DNA of 64,000 nucleotides, taken from sequence record NC_041911.1. One strand, written 5' to 3'. Below, one piece after another: positions 56,896 through 64,000 of the stretch. How positions within the stretch are numbered: position 1 is the first letter of the stretch; each line of letters opens with the position of its first letter. The notes beneath the pieces are model-generated. The model was not told the DNA's origin and made no database searches. It worked only from the letters and a program-made list of their open reading frames with translations. The position numbers and the translations under genes are program-made.

Positions 56896-57602
56896 TAAGC
56901 GGTTCTTCCTGTAGTGTCGAGAATGAAATTGCGAATGGCTTGCAGGTTCAGCTGGGTTACGCGTGACGTAAACTCGTTGTGCTTGACATTCGCAAACTGA
57001 TTCGTACGGATCACCTGGGCCGTAGTCTCGAAGGGGTTGGTTTTGTTGCTGAACAGAGTGCGCAGCGCAATGCGCATGGTATCTCGTTCATGCTTGTTCT
57101 GCTTCGCTGGAGAGCCGAGCCAACGGAGCATACTCTCGTTAGCCTTCTTGATTACCACATCCTTAGGCGTATCGCCGGGCGCGCACACGAAGCGCGTGAC
57201 CTTGTTGAATGGCGAGTAGACTTGGAAGAGGACGTGTATTTGCTCCGCCGCATCACCACGCATCGTTGCCACGCGTTTCTTGCCTTGGAGAGCCATCCAC
57301 TGTTCAACAGTGGGGCGACCATGGATCGGCAGAACGAAGAACTGGAACTCGGTGTTGTGCTCCAGCATTTGGTGCACTGTCAGCGCCACCTTATCCCATT
57401 TCGGCCCGAATCGGGTACGCAGCGTGCTGTAGTAGGCCAACGGATTCTTAGCCCACGTAGCGTAATACTGACCGGTGGAGGGATGGTAAACCATGATCCC
57501 CTTCCAGAAAGGGATATCGCCCTTTTGGGTTGTAGGGGTCACTTCGCGCAACAACACGCGGATATCGTCGGTAATGACCAGTTTCGAATGAGAGATTTTC
57601 AT
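56895..57602 (-). CDS. Hypothetical protein (possible degenerate GIY-YIG repeats)
   Basis: GIMVYHPSTGQYYAT and LFQVYSPFNKVTRFV segments; TAATG coupling. Confidence 0.65.
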   Translation of the reverse strand: MKISHSKLVITDDIRVLLREVTPTTQKGDIPFWKGIMVYHPSTGQYYATWAKNPLAYYSTLRTRFGPKWDKVALTVHQMLEHNTEFQFFVLPIHGRPTVEQWMALQGKKRVATMRGDAAEQIHVLFQVYSPFNKVTRFVCAPGDTPKDVVIKKANESMLRWLGSPAKQNKHERDTMRIALRTLFSNKTNPFETTAQVIRTNQFANVKHNEFTSRVTQLNLQAIRNFILDTTGRTA

Positions 57603-57661
57603 AGCCGGTTTCGTAGTTACGGCATAGCCGGAGGGACAAGCCCTCCGACCATTTGCCTGGT

Positions 57662-59044
57662 TTAGAACGGCGGTTCTTCGAGGATGCGCTTCATGGAAGA
57701 CTTCAGCACCGCAGCGATATCAAGCCCCAGCGAGTCGTACACCGAGACCATAAAGCGAGCAGTTTTGACCTTGTTGTTCAGGTCATTATCCAGCATCGTC
57801 TGAAAATCAAACAATGCGGTGAAGAAGGCCTCGAACGTACCATGCCCACGCGAGATCGCGATAAACGCTTTACGTAGGTACTTGGATGGATTGAGAAGAC
57901 GACTGTTGATAGCCGTCACGTTCAGCGTCACATTGTGTTCAGCCAGTAACACTGTTTCTACCGAACCCTGTACTTTAGCCGGCAGTGCTGCGTTGAGCGC
58001 ACGGATCAATTGCAGGATGAGGTAGTAGTTCTTCGGCCGAATAGTTCGCGCAACTTGTGCATATTCCACACGCACCGGGTAGTCGCCGAACTTACTGAGC
58101 GGGATTTCCGTCAGTTCGTAGACAGACTTGGTGTCGAAGTCCTTGTTGACCTTGTCGTAACCCTTCAGCGACACACGAGCATGATCGCGCGCGTCCATGT
58201 ACATCAGCACGAGATCGCGCAGCAGATCTTGCGATTCCGGACTGACTTGACTGAACTGGTCCGTCGACACAAACACGCCATAGTTGGTGGCGAGGTCGCT
58301 GCCGAGTACCGCATTGACGAAGTTGAACAGCAGCTCTTCCCGCGCCAATGTTTCCATATTGCGAACTTCGACGTCCACCCGGCGCAGCAGTCTCTCGATA
58401 GTGTCTTTATCGATCACACCGTGATAGCCGCGGTGTTTGCTGAACACGTTTTCATTACCGACGAATCGGTAATGCCCTTCCCGCACCAGCGCACGGTAGG
58501 CGTTGTTTGCCTCCAGTGGCTTCTTCGGATGGAAGAGCATGACGATCTTGTTCTTCTCGGCATTGAGGTTCATCGTCAGATCGACGTTTTCCGTCTCACT
58601 GTAGTTCTTGATGGCCTCGGCCACCGAATCCGTCACGGCCGGTACAAACTCGTCCGGGTCGATAGAGGCTTCGATGTCTTCACCGCGCATCTCTGCCACC
58701 CACATCTTACCGATCGCTTTGGAGAACTTCTCGATGTCTTCCGGTGTCAAGTTCTCCTCATCTCCTTCCAGAACTTTCCCCATGCTTACGAGGTCTGCGG
58801 TCGTGAACTTATCCGGAGTTGGCTGACTATTATCAGCTTTCGGATTTTCGGCGGGCTTGTCTTTTCCGAGCATCCAGCCGAAAGCATTAGACAACCTCTC
58901 AACATCCTCAGGAGAAATGCTTTCGGGGTTATCCAGATTGATTGTTCGGGAGATGCCGTTTTCCATTAAAACGGCGACGTTCTCCGGAGGAGGAGATTCC
59001 CCGGCATTAGTTTCGCCGGTAGAAGGTTTCTGTCTCTTTGTCAC
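57662..59044 (-). CDS. Hypothetical protein
   Basis: 460 aa, acidic N-terminus with duplicated (I/L)xPED(V/I)ExxSxAxG. Confidence 0.8.
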   Translation of the reverse strand: MTKRQKPSTGETNAGESPPPENVAVLMENGISRTINLDNPESISPEDVERLSNAFGWMLGKDKPAENPKADNSQPTPDKFTTADLVSMGKVLEGDEENLTPEDIEKFSKAIGKMWVAEMRGEDIEASIDPDEFVPAVTDSVAEAIKNYSETENVDLTMNLNAEKNKIVMLFHPKKPLEANNAYRALVREGHYRFVGNENVFSKHRGYHGVIDKDTIERLLRRVDVEVRNMETLAREELLFNFVNAVLGSDLATNYGVFVSTDQFSQVSPESQDLLRDLVLMYMDARDHARVSLKGYDKVNKDFDTKSVYELTEIPLSKFGDYPVRVEYAQVARTIRPKNYYLILQLIRALNAALPAKVQGSVETVLLAEHNVTLNVTAINSRLLNPSKYLRKAFIAISRGHGTFEAFFTALFDFQTMLDNDLNNKVKTARFMVSVYDSLGLDIAAVLKSSMKRILEEPPF

Positions 59045-59098
59045 GATGTGCTCTCCTTTAATAAGGCCGGTGGTTAGCCGGCCTTTGTTGCGACAACC

Positions 59099-60181
59099 TT
59101 AAAAGGGAAGACCTTCGTCGCTGATACGCTGACTGGATTCTCTCACCAGCGTTTCGAACGGCATGTCGATGCGAGCCAAGTAGCCGAAGTAGCAATCCAG
59201 CTCGTAGGTGATTGCGATGAAGTGTTCCTTCAGTGCTTCGGACAACTCGACGATCTGGTCCAGCAATTCCGACAACGGCTTCCGGTTCTGGATGAAGTCG
59301 GAAGTGATGTCCCGCAGGCGCGCCGATTTCGCCTGCAGCCTGGCGATCGTCTGGTGCGTGGTATTGGGGTAGCGCATGGCCGGAATGTGGTCCTGGATCA
59401 CCGTGGTCGGAATCACGCGGTTGAAGAAGGAGGCCAAGTCACGAATACGATGGAGCAATACACGTGGCTGAGTTTCGCGGAACTTGGGTTGCAGCTCGTC
59501 GAGGATTGGCATCAGCAGACTTTCCTGCGTGTAGCGGTAGTCCCACTGTTTCCAGGTGGTAAGCGCTTCTCGCATCCGAGGGATGAAGTTGATGGTCATC
59601 TCCAGCAACTGCATCTCTTCATCCGTGAGAATGCCATTCACCACAGCAGGTCGAGCCGGATGCCTGAGGCCGACGTGATTCGATGTCCAGGCTTCCTGTA
59701 CACCAAAGCTACCGGTCGGCAGCAACGCGGTATTCACGATGTACTCGCGATCGCCGTCGGCCAGCAAGTCTTCGAGGTCGTACTTGCGTTCCAGGTTCTT
59801 CAGCTTCTTGATGGCCTCACGCACCTTTTGCATCTGCATCCACCAGTCGGTGTTGCCGGTATACGGGATCGTGAAGATGCGAGCAATCTCGTTGTCCACC
59901 AGCGCCTTACTGAAGAACTGGCTGTTTTTCTGAGTCTCTTCCGAGAGATTGAGGACCGGGGAGAAAGACAGCGGTTCGCGCGCCTTGTTGTAGCTCTTCT
60001 GATCACCCCAGATATCGGAAGCGAGCTTGTTGGATTTCTCCGTCAAGGTTTTGGAGTATTCCGTGTCCCAGGGCGCGGTGTCGCTGTACGGCGCGAACGG
60101 AATGATCGGTGCTTGATCGGGCGCCGCTACGGCTACCGGCTTTTCCTGCTGTACTGCAGGTTTTTCATTCTTCGGTTTCAT
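59099..60181 (-). CDS. Hypothetical protein
   Basis: 360 aa ORF. Confidence 0.8.
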   Translation of the reverse strand: MKPKNEKPAVQQEKPVAVAAPDQAPIIPFAPYSDTAPWDTEYSKTLTEKSNKLASDIWGDQKSYNKAREPLSFSPVLNLSEETQKNSQFFSKALVDNEIARIFTIPYTGNTDWWMQMQKVREAIKKLKNLERKYDLEDLLADGDREYIVNTALLPTGSFGVQEAWTSNHVGLRHPARPAVVNGILTDEEMQLLEMTINFIPRMREALTTWKQWDYRYTQESLLMPILDELQPKFRETQPRVLLHRIRDLASFFNRVIPTTVIQDHIPAMRYPNTTHQTIARLQAKSARLRDITSDFIQNRKPLSELLDQIVELSEALKEHFIAITYELDCYFGYLARIDMPFETLVRESSQRISDEGLPF

Positions 60182-60246
60182 TGGCTTCTCTTTCGAAGGA
60201 GCGAGGGGTTAAAGAGGATATCTACAATTAACTCGCTACGGGTAAA

Positions 60247-60780
60247 TTAGGACTCTACTGCAGCGCATTCGATGCCGGCGAGTTCGAATACCGACTTGGG
60301 ATCGTATCCGTCGCAGTAGATCATTTCGAAAGCCGTCTCAACATCGATCATTCGCATGTCTTTGTTGGGTAGGCCTTCTTTACGTACCAGCATGTGCCAA
60401 ATTGCAGCACTCCAGGGACGTCTTGCCGACAAGATATCCGTCATGAACTCTGACGCCATCTTGTTGAACTTTTGGTCTTTCGAATGATGGAAGTTATACG
60501 ACGCAGTTTCGGCATTCGTGTCATCCACGAGAAAGCGAGCGATCTCGTAGATTTCTGCCAAGTCCTCTTTGGAGCCAGAGAACACCATATCGTCCACCGC
60601 ACCGAAGCAGCCGCTTTTGGTACGTACTTCATCTTCAGACACAAACACCATCTTGCTACCGTAGTAGACTTCAGCACGCACGAAATACTTGAGCGCTGCT
60701 TGCGGTGTCATTTGACGATCCTCGCAGACCATAACACCCCGCGCATCGTCGAACGTGCGAGTGTAATAATGCTTGATCAT
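60247..60780 (-). CDS. Hypothetical protein
   Basis: Start MIKHYY with AGGAAG SD, downstream of TATTAC box. Confidence 0.75.
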   Translation of the reverse strand: MIKHYYTRTFDDARGVMVCEDRQMTPQAALKYFVRAEVYYGSKMVFVSEDEVRTKSGCFGAVDDMVFSGSKEDLAEIYEIARFLVDDTNAETASYNFHHSKDQKFNKMASEFMTDILSARRPWSAAIWHMLVRKEGLPNKDMRMIDVETAFEMIYCDGYDPKSVFELAGIECAAVES

Positions 60781-60821
60781 TCTTCTTCCTTTCGTTGTCA
60801 CTACCAGATGTATTCCCAGTA

Positions 60822-60844
60822 GTAATATGTTGCCAGCGAATTTT
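60822..60844 (-). promoter_or_regulatory. phiKZ-type early promoter box (TATTAC)
   Basis: AAAATTCGCTGGCAACATATTAC; matches 44017-44039 at 22 of 23 nt. Confidence 0.6.
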
Positions 60845-60862
60845 TGAGAAAAAGAAACCACC

Positions 60863-60908
60863 AACATAAAAGCGAGGAGACCCGAAGGTCTCCTCGCTCG
60901 TTATGCCG
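60863..60908. terminator. Hairpin flanked by CATAAAA and TTATGCCG
   Basis: gcgaggagac-ccgaag-gtctcctcgc. Confidence 0.8.
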
Positions 60909-61638
60909 TGCGTTGTTTCTCAATGACTGTCGCTGTCACGTACAAGACGAAGGATAACAACAGGAGGTATGTGGAGAGTGCCATGGCGTTGTCGAACTCA
61001 AACAAGTGAAACCGCTCAAAGATTTCAGTCGTCATGACTTTAGGCCAATACGCAAACACCACGATCACTCCAAACATCGATAGACCAAACGACGTACAGG
61101 TCACGAAAATCCGCACCAAACCCCTCAGATTGCTCCGAATGTAGATTTGGACTGCAACTGTACGTCGCGATGCTCCGAGCGCGTAGGCGGCCTCTAGAAT
61201 GTCTCTATTGGTGCCTCTGAATACTTGAGCCACCAACACAATGCAGTAAGGAGTCAGGCAGTACAGCTGCGCCACCAATAGCCCTAACCACGTATTGACG
61301 AAGATGTCGCCAAACAGCATTCCAAAGATGCCGCTCTTGCCGTAGAGCATTAACAAAGCCACGCCAAGCACGATGTCCGGTACTGCGAGCAACAGCCCAC
61401 TGACCAAAGACATCACCGTCCCAGCGCGACTTGGTACAGCCATCGCGAATGCAACAGGAAACGCCAGCACGAGCGCTCCTAGAGAAGCTAGAGCGCTTAG
61501 GAGTAGCGATGTACCGAGTGCAGGCAGACACTCGACAAGCACCGCTACATTGAACGAGAACTGACTCAGTACGTACAGAACAGGCGCCATCAGCCACAGA
61601 CAAATGACGCCGTTCGTGACTGATAGTGCGCGACCCAT
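60901..61638 (-). CDS. ABC transporter permease (ModB/WtpB/CysT-like)
   Basis: About 6 TM, EAA motif EAAYALGAS, PDIVLGVALL; TAATG coupling. Confidence 0.85.
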   Translation of the reverse strand: MGRALSVTNGVICLWLMAPVLYVLSQFSFNVAVLVECLPALGTSLLLSALASLGALVLAFPVAFAMAVPSRAGTVMSLVSGLLLAVPDIVLGVALLMLYGKSGIFGMLFGDIFVNTWLGLLVAQLYCLTPYCIVLVAQVFRGTNRDILEAAYALGASRRTVAVQIYIRSNLRGLVRIFVTCTSFGLSMFGVIVVFAYWPKVMTTEIFERFHLFEFDNAMALSTYLLLLSFVLYVTATVIEKQRTA

Positions 61639-62426
61639 TACTGGATCAGACCCAGGCTCTTGAAGGACTGGATGTTCTTCGGATCAGCCAGGAACTTCAC
61701 GAAGGCAGCCGTTTCCGGACGGTTGTTCATGATGCCCACACCGAACGAGGACACGTGACCCGGCACCTTTTCACCGTTCTTCAGCGTGTACGACACTTGA
61801 CTGTAGTCATAGTTCGGATTATCCAGACCGTACGGCGCCGGCAGTTCGAAGAACTTCTGCTTCGAGCCGACCGCGAACGACTTGTAGGTGAAGATCACGT
61901 CGAGGTTGCCGGCCTTCATCAGGTTGAACAGATCCGTGGTCTCGTTACGGTCGTACTTCGACACCGCCTGGAACTTGGTGCCGTGTGCTTGGTTGTACAG
62001 ACCGAAGATGAAGTGTGCGTAGTAGCCCAGCGGGTCAGCATTCGGGTTCGAGAAACCGTAGTTCAGCTTGGACAGCTTTTGCATCCAGTTGTCCTTGGTG
62101 AAACCCGGGTCCTTGAGGTAGACCAGCACGATCGGATCGATGGCGATCTGTTGGGCACGCACGTCTTTGAAGCGCGAGAGAAGCCAGGTGTCTTCGGTGA
62201 AGAACAGATCCGGCTTGTAGCCTTGCTTGAGGTAGTTCGCCAGGCCGGTCACGGACTCGGTTTCGCGCAGCTTGGTGGTGTGACCGGTAGCCTTGTCGAA
62301 GGCCGGAGCCAGTTGTTTCACCAACGGGAACGGGCTGTCTTCGGAGTACACCGACAGGTTGCTGGCGAAGACCGCGAACGAGATGAATGCCGTGGCAATG
62401 GCGGCAAAGAAGTGCTTGAGTTTCAT
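61638..62426 (-). CDS. ABC substrate-binding protein (WtpA/ModA-like)
   Basis: Signal peptide; GFSNPNADPLGY, RNET, LDVIFTYKS. Confidence 0.75.
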   Translation of the reverse strand: MKLKHFFAAIATAFISFAVFASNLSVYSEDSPFPLVKQLAPAFDKATGHTTKLRETESVTGLANYLKQGYKPDLFFTEDTWLLSRFKDVRAQQIAIDPIVLVYLKDPGFTKDNWMQKLSKLNYGFSNPNADPLGYYAHFIFGLYNQAHGTKFQAVSKYDRNETTDLFNLMKAGNLDVIFTYKSFAVGSKQKFFELPAPYGLDNPNYDYSQVSYTLKNGEKVPGHVSSFGVGIMNNRPETAAFVKFLADPKNIQSFKSLGLIQ

Positions 62427-62497
62427 GTTGATCTCAGGTTTGGAGGGGATTTAAAGCGAAACGGCCGAAACCGTTTCGCCCCTTTGGTTGCTCTTGA

Positions 62498-63418
62498 TTA
62501 CAGGTCGTACCACGGCCAGCCGCCATGGTTGTTCGCATCCACTTCTTGCCACTTCGGATGCGTGCCGGTCTTGTCCTGGATGTCACCCAGCTTGGCGTTG
62601 AAGCAAGCGCGCATGGACTTCAGCTTGTCTTGCATGCCAGCCGAACGATACACACGGGACACGAGCAGCGCTTGGGTAGCCACCGATTGCACGCCTGCGG
62701 CGTTCAGGTTGGCGTAGGACAGCTTGGCCGGGAAGTACAGCTTCGAAGCTGCCAGCTTGCTCACGAGGTCAGCGGGAATCGGCAGGATCTTGAACGAAGC
62801 CGGCAGAGTCTTCACCATCGGGTGCGGTGCGCCGCCAACGACCAGGATCGCATCCAGTTCACCCGACAGCAGTTTGGCTTTCAGCTGGTCATTGTTTGCC
62901 ACCGGCAGCACTTTGAAGCCTAGACCGGAGTTGGCAGCCACGACGGAAGCGGAAGCGATCGAACCACCCACGGCGCCGACGTTGCGACCGCGCAGGTCCG
63001 ACAGTGTCTTGAACTGAACGTCCTTGGCACCCAGGGAAGTACCGAAGTAGCCACCTTCTTTCTTCACATCAGCACGTGCGATGAAGTGCAGCTCTTCGGG
63101 ATGCAGAGCTAGCAGGGTCTTGATATTCGCGACCTTGGAGGCATCGGTACGGCGCTCGAATTCGAGCATGTCGGCCTGGACGATGGCTGCGTTGACTTGG
63201 TTGCCGATCAGCAGGTTCTTGTTGTCGATACCGCCGGTGGTGGTCTGTTCTTGCCAGTTGCCGTTGCCGCAGACGGCGGCCAGCTCGTTGAACATGATGC
63301 TGTAGGTCGAGCCGCCCTTGCGGTCGCCGGTAGCGACGATGATCTTTTCTTGCGCGAATGCTTGCGCGGTAAACGCGAACGCCAGCAGCGCTGCGATCGA
63401 GGCGATGAACTTCTTCAT
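62498..63418 (-). CDS. TAXI-family TRAP solute receptor
   Basis: Signal peptide MKKFIAS; ATG...STY, TTGGIDN, IVQAD, LHPEELHFIAR. Confidence 0.85.
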   Translation of the reverse strand: MKKFIASIAALLAFAFTAQAFAQEKIIVATGDRKGGSTYSIMFNELAAVCGNGNWQEQTTTGGIDNKNLLIGNQVNAAIVQADMLEFERRTDASKVANIKTLLALHPEELHFIARADVKKEGGYFGTSLGAKDVQFKTLSDLRGRNVGAVGGSIASASVVAANSGLGFKVLPVANNDQLKAKLLSGELDAILVVGGAPHPMVKTLPASFKILPIPADLVSKLAASKLYFPAKLSYANLNAAGVQSVATQALLVSRVYRSAGMQDKLKSMRACFNAKLGDIQDKTGTHPKWQEVDANNHGGWPWYDL

Positions 63419-63452
63419 TTCAGTTTCTTCCTTGCTTCTTGGTTGAGAGAGA

Positions 63453-63596
63453 TTACAGCTTGTAACCGGAGTCTTGAGCAGCAGGCTCGGCGGCTGCAGG
63501 AGCAGCTTCAACCGGGGCTTGCGACTGGTTCGTGGCGAAGTACAGACCGCCGAGGATGGCGAGCATCAGTACGCCGCCGATGATACTGGCTTTCAT
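63453..63596 (-). CDS. Small membrane-anchored protein (47 aa)
   Basis: MKASIIGGVLMLAILGGLYFATNQSQAPVEAAPAAAEPAAQDSGYKL; ATGA overlap. Confidence 0.65.
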   Translation of the reverse strand: MKASIIGGVLMLAILGGLYFATNQSQAPVEAAPAAAEPAAQDSGYKL

Positions 63597-64000
63597 GCGA
63601 TCACCTTGACGTTTTCGATGGGTTTCAGAATGTTGCCCAGGATCACGCCGCCTTCAGCCGTATAGTTGATGGCGCGCACTTCTTGACCCTTGATCTGGTC
63701 ACGGACGTAGTTGTCGTCGGCGAGCGCCATGCGCAGCTGAGCGATGGCTTTGGCGTTGGTGTTGTCGACTTCGTCGAACGCAACCTCTTCCTTGAACTTC
63801 GACATGAAGTCCTCGCCAGCATTCATAGCCGCACCGGTCTCGACCGCGGCCAGCGACATCTCGTACAGATCCTTGGCTTTCACGACGTTGCGCTTGAACA
63901 CTTCCAGCGACGTCTTGGCATCCTTGAACTGGTCAACGCGGTAAGCCAGCAACCGCTCGAAGTCGCTAAGCTGATCCTGATAGGTTCTGGCTTCTTCCGG
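63593..64000 (-). CDS. Helical hypothetical protein, 5'-truncated by window edge
   Basis: Frame stays open to base 64000. Confidence 0.7.
   Translation of the reverse strand, partial: PEEARTYQDQLSDFERLLAYRVDQFKDAKTSLEVFKRNVVKAKDLYEMSLAAVETGAAMNAGEDFMSKFKEEVAFDEVDNTNAKAIAQLRMALADDNYVRDQIKGQEVRAINYTAEGGVILGNILKPIENVKVIA

Follow-up and report, generated by a model that had tools for sequence, protein, structure and literature searches.

A mobile ABC binding protein-permease cassette with an acidified pocket and no ATPase in Ralstonia phage RP12 and unrelated large phage-like contigs

The gene pair at the locus and its boundaries

The stretch analysed here, called the window, spans 64,000 nucleotides of sequence record NC_041911.1 and corresponds to bases 124001-188000 of the 279,845-bp genome of the Ralstonia jumbo phage RP12. 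On its minus strand it carries two adjacent open reading frames (ORFs) for parts of an ATP-binding cassette (ABC) importer. ORF192 (61638..62426, 262 amino acids) encodes a periplasmic substrate-binding protein of the ModA/WtpA fold, as assigned by PF13531, the WtpA models and AlphaFold2/Foldseek. ORF191 (60901..61638, 245 amino acids) encodes a ModB/WtpB-type importer permease with about six transmembrane helices, as assigned by PF00528, WtpB, 2onk_C and hydropathy. The two genes form a horizontally mobile cassette that has no ATPase, and the ligand pocket of its binding protein has been acidified. An original prediction, made from the sequence alone, had placed a coupled pair at 60901-62426, and the two minus-strand frames lie exactly there. 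The ORF192 stop codon does overlap the ORF191 start as TAATG. All the motifs then quoted are present as well: in ORF192, NPNADPLGYY (residues 127-136), RNETTD (160-165), SEDSP (28-32) and TESV (56-59), and in ORF191 the EAA loop LEAAYALGAS (148-157).

The whole accessory cassette (60789..62501, minus strand) consists of a hairpin, the binding-protein gene, the permease gene and a terminator, and lies between two blocks common with the related jumbo phage FLC1-1B. In blastn, FLC1-1B aligns to window positions 60263-60788 and 62502-63825 at 74-77% identity; the 1,713 bp of RP12 between these blocks correspond to 605 bp with two small ORFs in FLC1-1B. The pair is absent both from this phage and from the related phage FLC4-3B. 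Upstream, a palindromic, strand-neutral hairpin of 9 pairs (62456..62479) occupies the 71-bp gap between ORF193 and ORF192. Downstream, an intrinsic-terminator-like hairpin with 13 pairs (8 G-C) and a T-rich tail (60870..60899, minus strand) begins 2 bases past the ORF191 stop codon.

The phage origin of the locus, which had been predicted, is confirmed for the part compared: in megablast, window 57000-64000 is 100% identical to RP12 (AP017924.1) and to its near-twin RP31. Every gene in this region is named 'hypothetical protein' in the GenBank record of RP12. The 2017 genome paper already lists both genes as "ABC transporter subunits", without analysis (PMC5468394). The existence of the genes under that name is thus published; new here are that the cassette is mobile and has no ATPase, that it is restricted to phage-like contigs and that its WtpA pocket is acidified.

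ORF192 has the ModA/WtpA fold

ORF192 passes the gathering cut-off (25 bits) of the Pfam family SBP_bac_11 (PF13531) with 70.1 bits. In NCBIfam it comes closest to the WtpA models TIGR03730 and NF003196, at 62.6 and 63.4 bits, far below the equivalog cut-offs of these models (242.75 and 355). The closest solved relative by sequence is the ModA/WtpA protein of Archaeoglobus fulgidus (E 6.5e-15). The AlphaFold2 model, built on a 109-sequence alignment of 7 phage-clade proteins and 102 cellular relatives, has a predicted local distance difference test score (pLDDT) of 95, with the N-terminal helix modelled at lower values. In a Foldseek search of the PDB, the top 10 matches of this model are all archaeal ModA/WtpA proteins (E 4e-19 to 3e-16, template modelling (TM) scores 0.70-0.76), headed by 3cij_A (E 4e-19, TM score 0.74). 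The WtpA models are matched by all 109 aligned relatives. The ModA/WtpA-like identity proposed for ORF192 is thus upheld by profile hidden Markov models and by Foldseek, and no grouping with an unrelated class of substrate-binding protein was found.

On inspection, residues 1-21 (62364..62426, minus strand) form a probable Sec signal peptide, with two Lys, a 16-residue hydrophobic core and VFA before Ser22. A signal-peptide-like pattern is also found in ORF192 homologues. From these N-terminal features, ORF192 is apparently exported into the periplasm of the host. With an isoelectric point of 8.8, the mature protein as a whole is basic.

ORF191 retains the ATPase-coupling helix

ORF191 scores 35.1 bits against the Pfam family BPD_transp_1 (PF00528), above the cut-off of 26.4. 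Its best NCBIfam match is WtpB, at 76 bits, below the WtpB equivalog cut-off of 340. The closest solved relative is A. fulgidus ModB (2onk_C), which aligns over residues 5-239 with E 7e-18. The count of about six transmembrane helices rests on hydropathy and on this alignment.

The EAA loop, or coupling helix, spans residues 148-171 (61126..61197, minus strand) and is the segment that touches the ATPase in ABC importers. The EAA-x3-G pattern is present in ORF191 as LEAAYALGAS. Within it, AYALG is the longest invariant run of the permease alignment, which includes a member just 28% identical. One would not expect a permease that has lost contact with an ATPase to preserve its coupling helix, so a borrowed ATPase is favoured. 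This conservation is the main argument for such borrowing, and it is an indirect one.

In the third transmembrane helix (TM3), the motif VPDIVLG (residues 86-92; 61363..61383, minus strand) lies within the predicted membrane segment and contains the clade-invariant Asp88. This position is D in 6/6 phage-clade permeases; in a small set of 13 cellular CysT/ModB-type comparators it is T (10), P (2) or H (1). A. fulgidus ModB has His, in the matching PHT motif. Against the same 13 comparators only, Glu36 (R in the cellular proteins) and Arg176 are further clade-invariant changes. Asp88 may mark an altered translocation pathway.

No ABC transporter ATPase is encoded by RP12

A six-frame search of the whole RP12 genome (279,845 bp) with ABC_tran (PF00005) gave no match over the cut-off of 25. 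The best match, at 19.8 bits, is the P-loop GADGSGKST of a thymidylate-kinase-like ORF (L003:1069-1743; record ~207481-208155), in agreement with the thymidylate kinase listed for RP12 in the genome paper (PMC5468394). A tblastn search of RP12 with two genuine transporter ATPases returned nothing better than E 0.6. The genome of RP12, operon included, therefore lacks the cognate ABC_tran ATPase that would make the importer complete. The earlier remark that no ATPase was in view extends in this way to the entire genome by both searches. Nor does an ATPase gene stand beside the pair in the other carriers described below (L007, L009/L010 with the P0002 contig, and L017).

One way to account for this absence is transport that needs no ATPase. 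The binding protein would then gate the permease, and a cation would pass down the membrane potential, which could in principle drive a cationic ligand. The lack of an ATPase beside the pair in any carrier contig group and the clade-invariant Asp in TM3 are compatible with such a mechanism. However, the EAA coupling helix is invariant, which speaks for an ATPase partner that still binds, and no BPD_transp_1 permease, the type found in type I ABC importers, is known to work without one. ATPase-free transport is accordingly a long shot. If true, the pair would be the first binding-protein-dependent, ATPase-free transporter of the BPD_transp_1 fold, and large phages would have passed it around as an uptake unit reduced to two genes.

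The ligand pocket is acidified in the phage clade

The pocket was compared between the 7 phage-clade proteins and the 102 cellular relatives, with equivalences taken from the profile alignment to A. fulgidus 2onk_E/3cij_A and from the ModA ligand pattern. This pattern is Ser, Ser, Ala, Val and Tyr, with spacings of +27, +86, +27 and +18 in a Bacillus protein (PMC7604516). The spacing rule fits ORF192, in which the first Ser is followed at +27 by the second, and Tyr181 lies 18 residues past Thr163, as Tyr170 lies after Val152 in E. coli. E. coli ModA has the spacings of the Bacillus protein (+27, +86, +27, +18). Ser31, Ser58 and Leu133 are the equivalents of E. coli ModA Ser12, Ser39 and Ala125. 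Thr163 corresponds to E. coli Val152 and A. fulgidus Glu218, Tyr181 (in FTYKS, window 61878-61892) to E. coli Tyr170 and A. fulgidus Tyr236, and Asp131 to A. fulgidus ModA Asp153. The numbers Asp153 and Glu218 are reportedly those of Hollenstein et al., and they agree with the chain offset in the profile alignment.

Five motifs, all on the minus strand, carry the changes. In motif 1, SEDSP (62331..62345), Glu29 and Asp30 take the place of Ala and Gly; the cellular residues are A in 87/97 and G in 76/97, against E and D in 7/7 phage-clade proteins. In motif 2, TESV (62250..62261), Glu57 replaces a Gly present in 87/96 cellular relatives, with E in 6/7 and D in 1/7 of the phage clade. Motif 3, TEDTW (62184..62198), has Glu78 in 7/7 where cellular proteins have A (78/100) or S (20/100), and its Asp79 is kept family-wide. 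In motif 4, NPNADPLGYY (62019..62048), Asp131 is kept and Tyr136 stands in 7/7 in place of an Arg found in 89/102 cellular relatives. In motif 5, RNETTD (61932..61949), the alignment places Glu162 at a cellular Lys and Thr163 at the Glu218/Val152 position, where cellular proteins have E or S. Further toward the C-terminus, position 226 changes from I to S and position 228 from Y to F, and a His at position 224 is conserved and specific to the phage clade. Ser31, Ser58, Asp79, Asp131, Tyr135, Arg160 and Tyr181 are kept in both groups.

In sum over these motifs, five carboxylates are gained and two basic residues, one Arg and one Lys, are lost, a change of about -7 net charges. EDS, ES, GYY and RxE occur in all or nearly all 7 clade members, and the corresponding A/G/G/R/K in 57-91% of the 102 cellular relatives. 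The phage clade thus lacks the small-residue loops (AGS, GS) and basic residues (GYR, RPK) of WtpA, and its full pocket signature is found in 0/102 cellular relatives. The original prediction had noted acidic residues at the oxyanion pocket in SEDSP and ESV. Its pocket alignment stands in the 109-sequence alignment, where SEDSP aligns with cellular (H/C)AGSL and (T)ES with GS; the change is wider than it described, extending to E78, E162 and the loss of Arg136 and Lys162.

Position 30 of ORF192 is the equivalent of E. coli ModA Ala11 and A. ferrooxidans Gly9. These two residues have been disulfide-bridged across the pocket to the residue after the Val152/Glu position (PMC11350598; 3axf title). 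Because the equivalent positions could be bridged in this way, Asp30 should line the cleft and face Thr164 at the ligand; alignment and this published engineering together suggest that the new carboxylates may face the pocket.

Two relatives have a partly acidified pocket. P0021 (L015:4519-5391), with PES, TED and GYY, is an orphan binding protein in a bacterial metagenome-assembled genome, and P0031 (L016:1033-1770), with DDS and GES, lies on a 1.9-kb contig; neither context gave a clue to the ligand. A MoaA-like gene is located a few genes from P0021. Tyr135-Tyr136 was considered as a mimic of the tandem Tyr of the ferric-binding protein FbpA and dropped, as the FbpA tandem Tyr aligns nearer Tyr181. 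The FTED of ORF192 resembles the Glu57 motif of FbpA, which is a lead and not a test.

The pair could still be a molybdate/tungstate importer, working with host ModC and supplying Mo/W to host molybdoenzymes or to a phage MoaA-like radical S-adenosylmethionine (SAM) gene. The match of all 109 aligned relatives to WtpA models is in keeping with this, as is the retention of both pocket Ser, of Asp131 (= Asp153) and of Tyr181 (= Tyr236). The pockets of WtpA-type proteins, moreover, already coordinate the metal octahedrally by two carboxylates, an Asp and a Glu (PMC11350598). Of this carboxylate pair the phage clade keeps the Asp153 equivalent, but the Glu218 position is Thr163 in 7/7, with Glu162 one residue earlier. 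The charge change in the pocket motifs, unmatched in the cellular relatives, and the scores far under the WtpA equivalog cut-offs also speak against it, and a dianion in so acidic a pocket would be chemically unfavourable. RP12 does have a MoaA-like gene, ORF79, but according to the genome paper it belongs to a radical-SAM cluster, ORF76-80, away from the ABC pair (PMC5468394). A retained Mo/W function therefore appears unlikely, and the pocket is read here as that of a protein for a cationic ligand.

The cassette is mobile and under purifying selection

Among 50,697 phage records, tblastn (E <= 1e-3) finds either protein only in RP12 and RP31, apart from a permease match in 'Acinetobacter phage MD-2021a'. 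This match was rejected as a phage example, as its locus looks like a bacterial chromosome. The 'Acinetobacter phage MD-2021a' records (328-378 kb) are probably mislabelled; the locus (L014; CAKLQH020000001.1, 193522-203965) contains pobA, pcaR, afuA-cysA-fbpB, iscS and phnX. The profile phrog_1577 (528 positions) was likewise rejected as a binding protein-permease fusion, since the match covers the second half of the profile only. It seems likelier to be a double-permease (FbpB-type) family, and the sole non-Ralstonia tblastn match in the phage collection is a permease gene, fbpB, of about 570 amino acids.

A HMMER profile search of 1.84 billion cluster representatives yields just four proteins at E <= 1e-30; the scores then fall to 94 bits, the level at which ordinary WtpA-like proteins set in. 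A scan of viral contigs with the binding protein alone gave no match, and scans with the permease or with the alignment gave one IMG/VR contig only. Of two metagenome scans, the first found nothing and the second found L017.

Beyond RP12 and RP31, the carriers fall into three otherwise unrelated groups of large phage-like contigs with 20-53% GC. The pair is present on L007, an 86-kb phage-like contig, on L009/L010 together with the P0002 contig, and on L017, a phage-like contig of 82 kb and 21% GC that has a tail-fibre-like gene. On L017 the pair is flanked by two Cys-rich radical-SAM/SPASM-like genes (L017:4028-5086 and L017:7978-9099) and by the tail-fibre-like gene. L012, a contig of 1.8 kb that breaks off within the permease gene, nearly duplicates the L017 locus. 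L008 (L008:1885-3560) has the binding protein alone, 49% identical to ORF192, with no adjacent permease. Behind the L008 gene come a 70-residue ORF and an ORF cut by the contig end that has a coiled coil, an ABC-signature-like motif and a Walker B motif; by these features it looks SMC/Rad50-like and not like a transporter ATPase.

In tblastx against the RP12 genome, L009/L010 match in the pair only, and L007 has further, distant matches that fall in other parts of that genome. The carriers share no third gene next to the pair. The GC content of the pair tracks that of each carrier, from 20% to 56%. In a quick tree, the phage clade is monophyletic with a support of 0.81, and its sister is P0031. 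The best-scoring cellular relative, P0009 (L013; 94 bits against the phage-clade profile), is encoded in a binding protein-permease-ATPase operon beside molybdenum-cofactor genes. The pair is thus a horizontally mobile two-gene cassette.

Both genes are under purifying selection. In pairwise comparisons among RP12, L007 and L009, the ratio of nonsynonymous to synonymous divergence (dN/dS) is 0.19-0.25 for the binding protein and 0.07-0.17 for the permease, at dS of 0.6-1.8. These values bear on the notion that the pair is a decaying, functionless passenger, a fragment of a captured bacterial operon. Its incompleteness without an ATPase and its accessory nature, given its absence from FLC1-1B and FLC4-3B, might suggest as much. 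However, the frames are intact and constrained even where dS reaches 1.8, the genes are retained across carriers of 20-53% GC with their composition adjusted to each, and the monophyletic clade conserves its own motifs. Decay is hardly credible on this evidence.

A viral permease may recruit a host ATPase

We infer that the pair works with an ABC ATPase recruited from the host and takes up a cationic or metal ligand, a reading to which we give an even chance. In this scheme, ORF192 would be exported to the host periplasm, and ORF191 would be inserted in the inner membrane, where, like ModB, it would probably form a homodimer. ORF191 would dock a host ABC ATPase by its conserved EAA coupling helix, with an ATPase of the ModC/CysA type as the nearest kind. 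Phage and host parts would thereby make up a chimeric importer that works during the long infection cycle. Its ligand has probably ceased to be molybdate or tungstate. With five carboxylates and a conserved His gained and one Arg and one Lys lost, the pocket suggests a cationic ligand. A hard metal ion is the most likely candidate because the carboxylates come with His and Tyr, failing which the ligand would be a polyamine or an amine-bearing oxyanion compound.

Three observations weigh against this reading. Known cases of ATPase sharing are mostly in sugar or iron systems and not in ModB/CysT-type ones. The core oxyanion contacts Ser31, Ser58, Asp131 and Tyr181 are retained, which leaves room for an oxyanion or an oxyanion-bearing ligand. 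In L008, finally, the binding protein occurs without an adjacent permease.

The closest known system is A. fulgidus ModABC/WtpABC (2onk; 2onr, 3cij). The RP12 pair resembles it in both subunit folds, in the gene order from binding protein to permease, and in the NPNxDPxGY motif with its metal-coordinating Asp, both pocket Ser, the pocket Tyr and the EAA loop. It differs in having no ATPase subunit and only 24% identity, in the absence from ORF192 of the archaeal beta-hairpin insertion of about 26 residues, and in the pocket, where AGS becomes EDS, GS becomes ES, ADY becomes EDT, GYR becomes GYY and RPKE becomes RxET. The bacterial WtpA-like operon of P0009 (L013) is built from the same SBP_bac_11 and BPD_transp_1 families; unlike the RP12 pair, it has an ATPase directly downstream, molybdenum-cofactor neighbours and the canonical AGS, GS, GYR and RPKE. 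Among phage genes, cyanophage PstS is a periplasmic phosphate-binding protein, an auxiliary metabolic gene product, thought to feed a host ABC transporter. PstS, however, is a binding protein only and relies on a complete host PstCAB, whereas RP12 also brings a permease, and the ORF192 pocket has diverged from those of all cellular relatives.

Binding proteins and permeases encoded without an ATPase have precedents: in Staphylococcus aureus IsdEF, IsdF uses FhuC (PMC10147376), and in Bacillus subtilis MsmX serves several sugar importers (PMC8603345). The partners in those systems share one genome and belong to other importer subfamilies, whereas here a viral pair would meet a putative host ATPase. 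ABC importers of huge phages (bioRxiv 10.64898/2026.10.24.761521) are similar in being transport genes of large phages associated with envelope modules. They are described as complete and next to PspA, unlike the RP12-type cassette, which has no ATPase beside it and a different pocket.

If true, a host ATPase in a viral permease would be a clear case of a virus building a chimeric nutrient importer, and a natural experiment on how freely the ATPases and permeases of different ABC systems are interchangeable. ORF192 itself is a compact ModA/WtpA scaffold with a high-confidence model, in which a handful of substitutions acidified the oxyanion pocket. Its ligand would show how specificity can flip from anion to cation within one fold, which is relevant to the design of metal-binding proteins. 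The ligand would also point to a resource that limits the replication of these large and diverse phages, whose carriers include phages of the plant pathogen Ralstonia solanacearum considered for biocontrol.

Genes adjoining the pair in RP12

In RP12, the pair adjoins an envelope trio, ORF195-ORF194-ORF193, which occupies window 62498-64000 and extends past the window end (L018:99-1985; record 186498-188384). In ORF195, a long coiled coil comes after two predicted membrane helices, and ORF194 is a membrane peptide of 47 residues. ORF195 was considered as a PspA-like protein, which is unsupported: no PspA Pfam family matches it at E <= 0.05, and its single-sequence model (pLDDT 71) has no Foldseek match at E <= 0.001, with Vipp1 only at E ~0.3. 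With no confirmed PspA match in ORF195 and no ATPase, the locus does not correspond to a PspA-associated ABC envelope module.

The vicinity of the trio, with its predicted membrane and periplasmic proteins, could hint at host manipulation without transport. The permease might titrate a host ATPase and shut off host uptake, or the binding protein might act in the periplasm as a sink or a sensor, with superinfection exclusion and signalling as examples. A coupling helix conserved without an ATPase and the L008 binding protein without a permease would also fit such roles. However, the genes are translationally coupled and co-transferred, and constraint extends over the whole of both, pocket and membrane helices included, which fits ligand-dependent transport better, and in the other carriers the pair is unlinked to the trio. 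A role outside transport is consequently improbable, and import with a borrowed host ATPase remains the preferred reading.

The trio recurs with matching gene sizes (~250, 50 and 305 residues) in the large-phage contigs L019 and L020 without the ABC pair, which marks the pair as an accessory insertion at the 3' end of the trio in RP12 and RP31. ORF193, the last gene of the trio, encodes a TAXI/NMT1_3-like binding protein that has no membrane subunit of a tripartite ATP-independent periplasmic (TRAP) transporter nearby, and its family comprises more than 130 cluster representatives.

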